DNA of 36,604 nt from Octopus bimaculoides (lineage: Eukaryota). The stretch's first letter is position 1, and every line of letters begins with the position of its first letter. Under the pieces are notes generated by a model. That model was not told where the DNA came from, searched no databases, and saw only the letters and a program-made list of their open reading frames with translations. The translations under genes and the position numbers were made by a program. The DNA is taken from contig NC_068991.1 in the NCBI RefSeq assembly GCF_001194135.2, positions 47,995,865 through 48,032,468 of the forward strand. Direction: 5' to 3'. Positions 4,462 to 4,849 of this stretch are shown here, in pieces.

Positions 4462-4602
4462 ATCGTCCTTGTAACATTCACTGCAGTAATAAAGACAAGC
4501 ATCTACAGGACTGATGTCATTGGAATTTGGTCTAATCGCTTCCGCCGTTGACATCATGCAAGCTTCTAATGCAAGCAGTACTGTGAGAATTGTTAAACTC
4601 AT
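4462..4602 (-). CDS. Coding exon of a secreted Cys-rich peptide precursor, eclosion-hormone-like (partial; the exon spans 4628-4462)
   Basis: Acceptor ttttcttatttactattttcag ends at 4629 and a phase-0 donor GTAAGA starts at 4461. Translation: MSLTILTVLLALEACMMSTAEAIRPNSNDISPVDACLYYCSECYKDD. It has a hydrophobic signal peptide ending in A-E-A, then C-x3-C-x2-C, the N-terminal Cys spacing of eclosion hormones. The frame is open back to the acceptor, so an upstream ATG is possible. Confidence 0.65.
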
Positions 4603-4849
4603 TCTGGATTTGGATATATATTCACTGTCTGAAAATAGTAAATAAGAAAATTACAGAAACAACGACAACAACAACAACAAACATTGCAGATAAACTTTTA
4701 TTTTTTATACAGGAATTTGTGAGACAAGGAAGGGTTCATGACCTTTGCAGGTAAGCGATTGCCGTTCAAGCAAACCGTGAAAACACGTGTTATTGATAGA
4801 TGTTTTATGTTTGCTCTGCGTTGTTATAAAGTCTTTCGTAAGCGTAATA

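Follow-up and report, generated by a model that had tools for sequence, protein, structure and literature searches.

Which peptide is encoded by a short exon on the minus strand of a repeat-rich stretch of Octopus bimaculoides DNA, and does it belong to one of the known hormone families? The question arose from an earlier note on this stretch of 36,604 nt (hereafter the window), which had described a hidden exon at positions 4462-4628 encoding an eclosion hormone (EH)-like neuropeptide precursor or, as a fallback, another secreted disulfide-rich peptide. It is this fallback that is favored by the evidence compiled below. With a probability of about 90% the segment represents exon 2 of the gene LOC106870833 and contributes to a secreted six-cysteine peptide of an apparently octopod-restricted family, for which a hormone- or neuropeptide-like ligand would be the likeliest role and which is no demonstrable EH.

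Exon 2 and the gene model of LOC106870833

Direct reading of the sequence as well as tblastn with the RefSeq and UniProt proteins placed the exon at window positions 4462-4628 on the minus strand. Its first 26 nt (4603-4628) are part of the 5'UTR and the remaining 141 nt (4462-4602) are coding sequence with the product MSLTILTVLLALEACMMSTAEA/IRPNSNDISPVDACLYYCSECYKDD. The 3' splice site of intron 1 (4629-4690) carries its AG at 4629-4630 behind a long pyrimidine-rich tract (ttgttgttg...ttttcag), giving the acceptor ttttcAG/ACAGTG at 4629/4628. The 5' splice site of intron 2 (GTAAGA, 4456-4461) forms the donor GAT/GTAAGA at 4462/4461, which coincides with a codon boundary (phase 0). That canonical splice sites bound the exon had been recognized in the earlier note, and the exon boundaries given there equal those of the annotated gene. 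Unspliced, the reading frame opens with the ATG at 4602, reaches a stop at 4438 and consists of MSLTILTVLLALEACMMSTAEAIRPNSNDISPVDACLYYCSECYKDD followed by VRNFNIY and the stop codon; its measured length of 54 aa agrees with the short ORF of about 55 aa mentioned before.

A phmmer search with the 47-aa exon product against 1.84 billion representative proteins retrieved A0A0L8HG85 (94 aa, 100% identity over residues 1-47, E 8.5e-23) and GAB1601385.1 from Argonauta hians (93 aa, 53% identity, E 1.7e-6). The former is listed in UniProt as “Uncharacterized protein” of O. bimaculoides and has a 105-aa RefSeq form as cluster mate (XP_014772543.1 / XP_052827744.1, LOC106870833); the latter is annotated as a hypothetical protein. 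The exon can therefore not be called hidden, being already contained in RefSeq and UniProt (LOC106870833, A0A0L8HG85), and judged by sequence identity window positions 4462-4628 are coding exon 2 of the annotated gene LOC106870833. Exact look-ups with the 54-aa unspliced ORF and the 94-aa UniProt form matched no called gene; loci were obtained with the RefSeq form of 105 aa (L001, Octopus) and with the Argonauta protein (L002, Argonauta), and on these the exons were located by tblastn with the XP and UniProt proteins. Along 32,668 bases the reverse complement of the window shows 0 mismatches to L001 (O. bimaculoides GCA_001194135.2, chromosome CM046611.1), and exon 2 is identical to L001 28041-28207.

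The splice sites of LOC106870833 are canonical throughout. Intron 2 comprises 9111 nt and leaves the window at its left edge, and the last exon (ctactttcAG/GGTAAGAAA...TAA), which codes for GKKMMQCANGVCPHASTSAHDFLQLLNNNDCSVDVVSNRLYRQNYFQ up to the stop codon, is situated outside the window, about 4.65 kb past its position 1. Joined to exon 2 it gives the 94-aa precursor. The prediction of a downstream exon adding three further Cys in C-x3/4-C spacing was borne out by this last exon, which contributes exactly three (C-x4-C-x18-C). When the minus strand was scanned for stretches free of stops and containing two or more Cys, a candidate second exon had come up inside the window, at about 3696-3800 on the minus strand (gtgAG/FKCHRNCKYQLLLLC...). 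Behind the AG this stretch translates as FKCHRNCKYQLLLLCSTRL... up to a stop, contains three Cys (C-x3-C-x8-C) and would be in frame if spliced to exon 2. It was dropped, as the real last exon lies 9.1 kb downstream and outside the window; the stretch is unused in the annotated gene, shows no conservation and illustrates how a plausible-looking “second exon” can originate by chance.

The RefSeq model additionally includes an exon 1, whose coding part (ATGGAGG) covers window positions 22662-22668 on the minus strand and is followed by the donor GTAAGC (22656-22661). It supplies the N-terminal extension MED-SEYISKSR (MEDSEYISKSR) of XP_014772543.1, which is not conserved. Exon 1 is probably a 5'UTR exon and does not provide the true start. 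In Argonauta the homologous ATG is preceded by an in-frame TGA at a distance of 9 nt and by the acceptor at a distance of 26 nt, the latter equal to that in Octopus; for these two reasons the methionine of MSLTI (window 4602) is regarded as the conserved start. On the opposite strand, a retroelement ORF at about 22280-22700 (plus strand, ...IPVIVGATG...EVQK-type) overlaps exon 1 and its start codon (22662-22668, minus strand) with its C-terminal tail. The ORF at 18499-18912 is similar to it, and so is one sequence of the Argonauta locus. It may be that the 5' exon of LOC106870833 is TE-derived and species-specific. That the gene is transcribed and spliced in the described manner is suggested by the public gene models and by conservation.

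The Argonauta orthologue and the predicted precursor

Loss of the Cys frame in related cephalopods had been named as an outcome that would speak against a genuine peptide gene. In A. hians the frame is kept: all six mature Cys occupy positions identical to those in Octopus, the mature chain comprises 72 aa in each species, and the two proteins are 52% identical. In Argonauta an intron of about 620 nt makes for a compact gene, whose donor, also gtaaga, falls on the homologous codon boundary in the same phase 0. When both loci were compared, only the two coding exons stood out as matches at the gene itself. The Nei-Gojobori method gave a pN of 0.28 and a pS of 0.67 between the orthologues, with a dN of 0.35; the resulting dN/dS of about 0.21 indicates purifying selection on the protein. 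A 93%-identical stretch of 114 nt in the 3'UTR of both species was rejected as a further match, as it is just a (TG)n microsatellite. This microsatellite follows soon after the stop codon in either species (L001 37530-37640, L002 11050-11160, outside the window). Synteny with the AAA-ATPase gene downstream of the Argonauta gene was not seen within the 10-kb octopus flank.

These comparisons bear directly on the suspicion that the exon might be a chance ORF or a gene-prediction artefact of intergenic, repeat-rich DNA. Microsatellites, retroelement fragments and assembly gaps abound in the surrounding 36 kb, and reading frames of such length are common there: 65 ATG-ORFs of at least 54 aa were counted in the window versus about 48 in composition-matched simulations, so that ORF length by itself is no proof of coding. 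The combination of a signal-like N-terminus with C-x3-C-x2-C, a criterion chosen post hoc, occurs once in the window versus 0.005 times expected per simulated window. A chance origin is, however, hard to reconcile with an orthologue from another octopod family in which the Cys, the position and phase of the intron and the UTR acceptor are all conserved and dN/dS is 0.2, and with the phmmer E value of the Argonauta match against 1.84 billion proteins. As far as these sequence data go, the orthologue effectively refutes the chance-ORF explanation, to which we assign hardly any probability.

The start codon and a predicted 22-aa signal peptide (MSLTILTVLLALEACMMSTAEA) are encoded by positions 4537-4602 of the minus strand, and positions 4462-4536 encode the first 25 mature residues (IRPNSNDISPVDACLYYCSECYKDD) with Cys14, Cys18 and Cys21 (C-x3-C-x2-C). 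That exon 2 contributes the signal peptide of a secreted disulfide-rich peptide, and with it the first three Cys, is in line with this predicted hydrophobic leader and the Cys pattern behind it. The h-region of the leader has a mean Kyte-Doolittle score of 2.8. Cleavage was assigned by rule to AEA/IRP, where the residues at -3 and -1 are A-x-A in Octopus and T-x-A in Argonauta ([AT]EA/I[RK]P). The mature peptide of 72 aa contains Cys at positions 14, 18, 21, 32, 37, and 56, corresponding to a spacing of 3-2-10-4-18 in both species. It has a mass of about 8.2 kDa in Octopus and is acidic to neutral (pI 5.4 in Octopus, 6.9 in Argonauta). Dibasic sites are not conserved between the two species (GKK in Octopus vs. 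RTK in Argonauta, KR in Argonauta vs. NR in Octopus), and a single intact chain is for this reason the likeliest product. AF2 on the two-sequence alignment placed helices at residues 32-43, 48-55, and 66-74 in a weak model with a mean pLDDT of 57. Altogether the generic features of a secreted disulfide-rich peptide precursor were found, namely a predicted signal peptide, an even and conserved number of Cys, a short mature chain and purifying selection.

We propose that translation would start at the ATG at 4602 and that the 22-residue signal peptide would direct the chain to the ER, where it would be cut after AEA (Ala22). The 72-residue product would then fold into a small, mainly helical domain with three disulfides, and the chain of about 8 kDa would probably be secreted intact and act extracellularly.

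Comparison with eclosion hormone and other peptide families

EH is ligand of a receptor guanylyl cyclase and has the disulfide connectivity C1-C5, C2-C4, C3-C6. Its occurrence in molluscs, mentioned in the earlier note, is documented (PMC6425005; PMC6660194; PMC8398477 section 2.4.2). The EH ligand set in supplementary file 18 of PMC6660194 includes two proteins of O. bimaculoides: Ocbimv22037767 is the bona fide octopus EH (...RCLFECQVCYDMYGYHFDSNKCGNNCVETAGKSIDVGC...) and derives from a gene separate from LOC106870833, and Ocbimv22024629 is an eight-Cys EH-like peptide. The LOC106870833 protein is absent from this set.

The profile search recommended by the earlier note did not support an EH-like assignment: with E<=10 as the limit, the Pfam Eclosion model (PF04736) matched neither the 47-aa exon product nor A0A0L8HG85 nor GAB1601385.1. 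The negative result is informative because the same model detects the EHs of octopus (Ocbimv22037767, 28.7 bits), Idiosepius (25.3 bits), Gadila (22.2 bits), and Musca (119.8 bits). Three sets of sequences served to build custom HMMs: 34 published EH domains, their lophotrochozoan subset and the eight-Cys group. With the EH models the mature peptides scored 4-7 bits, values reached by 5-26% of Cys-preserving shuffles; over all three sets the scores were 0.4-6.7 bits, and 5%-49% of the shuffles scored as high. When the two-sequence family was compared with 26 EH domains by hhalign, only 15 columns were aligned (DACLYYCSECYKDDG vs. YRCLFECQVCYDMYG) with a probability of 22% and a pairwise E of about 1e-3. 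BLASTP against the octopus EH returned 5/9 identities with an E value of 0.076.

The arrangement of the Cys residues points in the same direction. All 35 EH domains considered (35/35, from 27 proteins) show the spacing 3-2-(12-18)-3-(10-14), whereas the LOC106870833 family has 3-2-10-4-18. The distance between C3 and C4 is thus x10 versus at least x12 (mostly 12-13) in EH, that between C4 and C5 is x4 versus x3, and that between C5 and C6 is x18 versus 10-14. Moreover, in the EH alignment A2, made up of 26 domains, glycine G33 never varies; it follows C5, lies before C6 and is missing in the Octopus peptide; the Argonauta peptide has a Gly between C5 and C6, at an offset different from that in EH. 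The conserved [YF]G/[FY]xG stretch which follows C3 in EH is missing in the LOC106870833 peptide as well.

Could LOC106870833 nevertheless be a strongly diverged EH paralogue, i.e., a third octopod EH-type gene with the EH fold and receptor guanylyl cyclase signalling? Both peptides share the same design, in that a signal peptide and a mature part of about 70 aa make up a secretory precursor of about 95 aa, with six Cys and predicted helices, and the predicted 22-aa leader and 72-aa remainder agree with the organization of EH precursors (signal peptide, single mature peptide of about 60-75 aa). In either case C-x3-C-x2-C opens the Cys-rich core, and the first Cys is precursor residue 36 in A0A0L8HG85 and in the octopus EH. 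Cys14, Cys18, and Cys21 are positions occupied by Cys in Manduca EH as well. The motif CL[FY]xCxxCY is common to cephalopod EHs and the LOC106870833 family, and it is the N-terminal ACL[YF]YCxxCY, resembling RCLFECQVCY of cephalopod EH, that accounts for the hhalign columns and the BLASTP identities. That three further Cys with C-x3/4-C spacing were foretold and then found also fits a diverged EH. On the other hand, the Pfam model is silent on the peptide at E<=10 while true cephalopod EHs score 25-29 bits, the HMM scores are reached by 5-26% of the shuffled sequences, the hhalign alignment does not extend past Cys3, three of the five Cys distances deviate, the invariant Gly between C5 and C6 is missing in Octopus, and the species already possesses a bona fide EH. 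We therefore consider a diverged EH paralogue unlikely. LOC106870833 is not a demonstrable eclosion hormone; as judged from the sequence comparisons, its likeness to EH is limited to the general design and the motif of the first helix and does not amount to family membership, though the two may share a very remote origin.

Unlikely as well is the idea that LOC106870833 and its argonaut orthologue founded an undescribed, octopod-specific hormone family by duplication of EH and radical divergence, in the course of which the N-terminal CLxxCxxCY helix would have been kept and the C-terminal half remodelled. If this is true, the EH-type ligands of cephalopods would number three, and the third might have a new receptor specificity. 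The knowledge on EH itself is left unchanged by our results, since the octopus already has a recognized EH.

Two further groups were considered. Like the LOC106870833 protein, the members of the eight-Cys EH-like group (Ocbimv22024629) are small, secreted, Cys-rich cephalopod peptides of similar size with CLxxCxxC. They differ from it by eight Cys, a CC doublet and the conserved DDGP and CDPR elements (CDPR...CLxGCLxC...CCxDC...DDGP), and the HMM of this group assigned 4.0 bits to A0A0L8HG85 and 0.4 bits to GAB1601385.1, values within the shuffle noise. The CHH/ITP/MIH family (PF01147), known from ecdysozoans, consists of secreted hormones that are helical, measure about 72 residues and have their six Cys joined in three disulfides. 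Its Cys spacing, C-x15-C-x2-C-x12-C-x3-C-x8-C, differs from the 3-2-10-4-18 of the LOC106870833 peptide, and the Pfam model Crust_neurohorm (PF01147) gave no match at E<=10 for LOC106870833 or the Argonauta protein. The family has been proposed to be a distant relative of EH (PMC8398477 section 2.4.2).

Range of the family, likely role and genomic surroundings

The exhaustive phmmer search was queried with the 47-aa half of the protein, and all remaining homologue searches were word-based. Of the latter, those with the 47-aa product returned nothing, and those with the full protein and the two-sequence alignment returned only the two known members. Sequence searches of Pfam, NCBIfam, and PDB, and a Foldseek search of the PDB with the low-confidence AF2 model, gave no meaningful match; the PDB contained no solved EH structure with which the model could be compared. 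A literature search for the gene, protein and UniProt identifiers found no paper that mentions LOC106870833, and none of the motif strings turned up in the supplements searched, which belong to surveys of mollusc neuropeptides and prohormones. Based on these sequence comparisons, LOC106870833 and the Argonauta protein would constitute an undescribed family of secreted six-cysteine peptides that is apparently restricted to octopods. Two species are known to carry it, and the octopod restriction may also arise because small genes are poorly annotated and searches with so short a protein are of limited sensitivity. The gene model is public in RefSeq and UniProt, yet the protein is covered by no family model, and LOC106870833 is one among many small secreted orphan genes of cephalopods.

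The function of the peptide is deduced entirely from the features described above, and the likeliest role would be that of a hormone-like or neuropeptide-like ligand. Signalling of this kind is preferred because of the dN/dS of 0.2, the single-copy gene and the non-cationic peptide. In view of the lineage-restricted distribution, a serious rival would be a secreted effector (a salivary or venom-gland, immune, or reproductive or egg-associated octopod peptide) in place of an endogenous signal; we regard this as a possible reading, which is less probable than hormone-like signalling. Small Cys-rich secreted proteins which are lineage-restricted and evolve fast are typical of such settings, and the present orthologues share 52% identity with a dN of 0.35. 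In addition, relatives in conserved neuropeptide families were not found, and the peptide was not encountered in those published sets of mollusc neuropeptides and prohormones that were searched. An effector role is less compatible with the pI values of 5.4 and 6.9, as most antimicrobial peptides are cationic and not acidic to neutral, and with a dN/dS of about 0.2, which denotes constraint, whereas diversifying selection is common in venom and immune peptides. Furthermore, the gene is single-copy, with no paralogues in either locus.

From mollusc neuropeptide surveys it has been argued that cephalopods are devoid of lineage-specific peptide innovations (PMC6425005). If the preferred reading as a hormone-like peptide holds true, an octopod-restricted member of this kind would be a small counter-example to that view, and if it were expressed in the brain or the optic gland it would be of some interest for cephalopod neuroendocrinology. 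A real small-peptide exon was in any case picked out by eye from 36 kb of repeat-rich octopus DNA.

The statement that this exon is the only convincing host coding sequence in 36 kb holds, as the window contains no further host CDS exon of any size. Neither tRNA genes nor Rfam families at gathering score were found in the window. The longest protein-like ORFs are repeat-derived: LINE-type reverse-transcriptase fragments (...YMDDLKLYA...GLEKCA...) lie at 1-400 on the minus strand and at 25114-25542 on the plus strand and represent the same domain in opposite orientations. Microsatellites are dense (3300-3500, 6114-6404, 14234-15230, 23669-24070, and many more) and comprise (GATA)n, (CT)n, (TA)n, (CA)n, and homopolymer-like tracts. 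The window contains seven N gaps with a total of 2327 N. One of them, at 1913-2667 within intron 2, is flanked by a 183-nt direct repeat of 100% identity (1456-1638 and 2668-2850) and adjoined by an 89-nt inverted repeat with 99% complementarity (1721-1809 / 1824-1912). The repeats around this gap look like a gap-closure or fold-back artefact of the assembly and not like biology.
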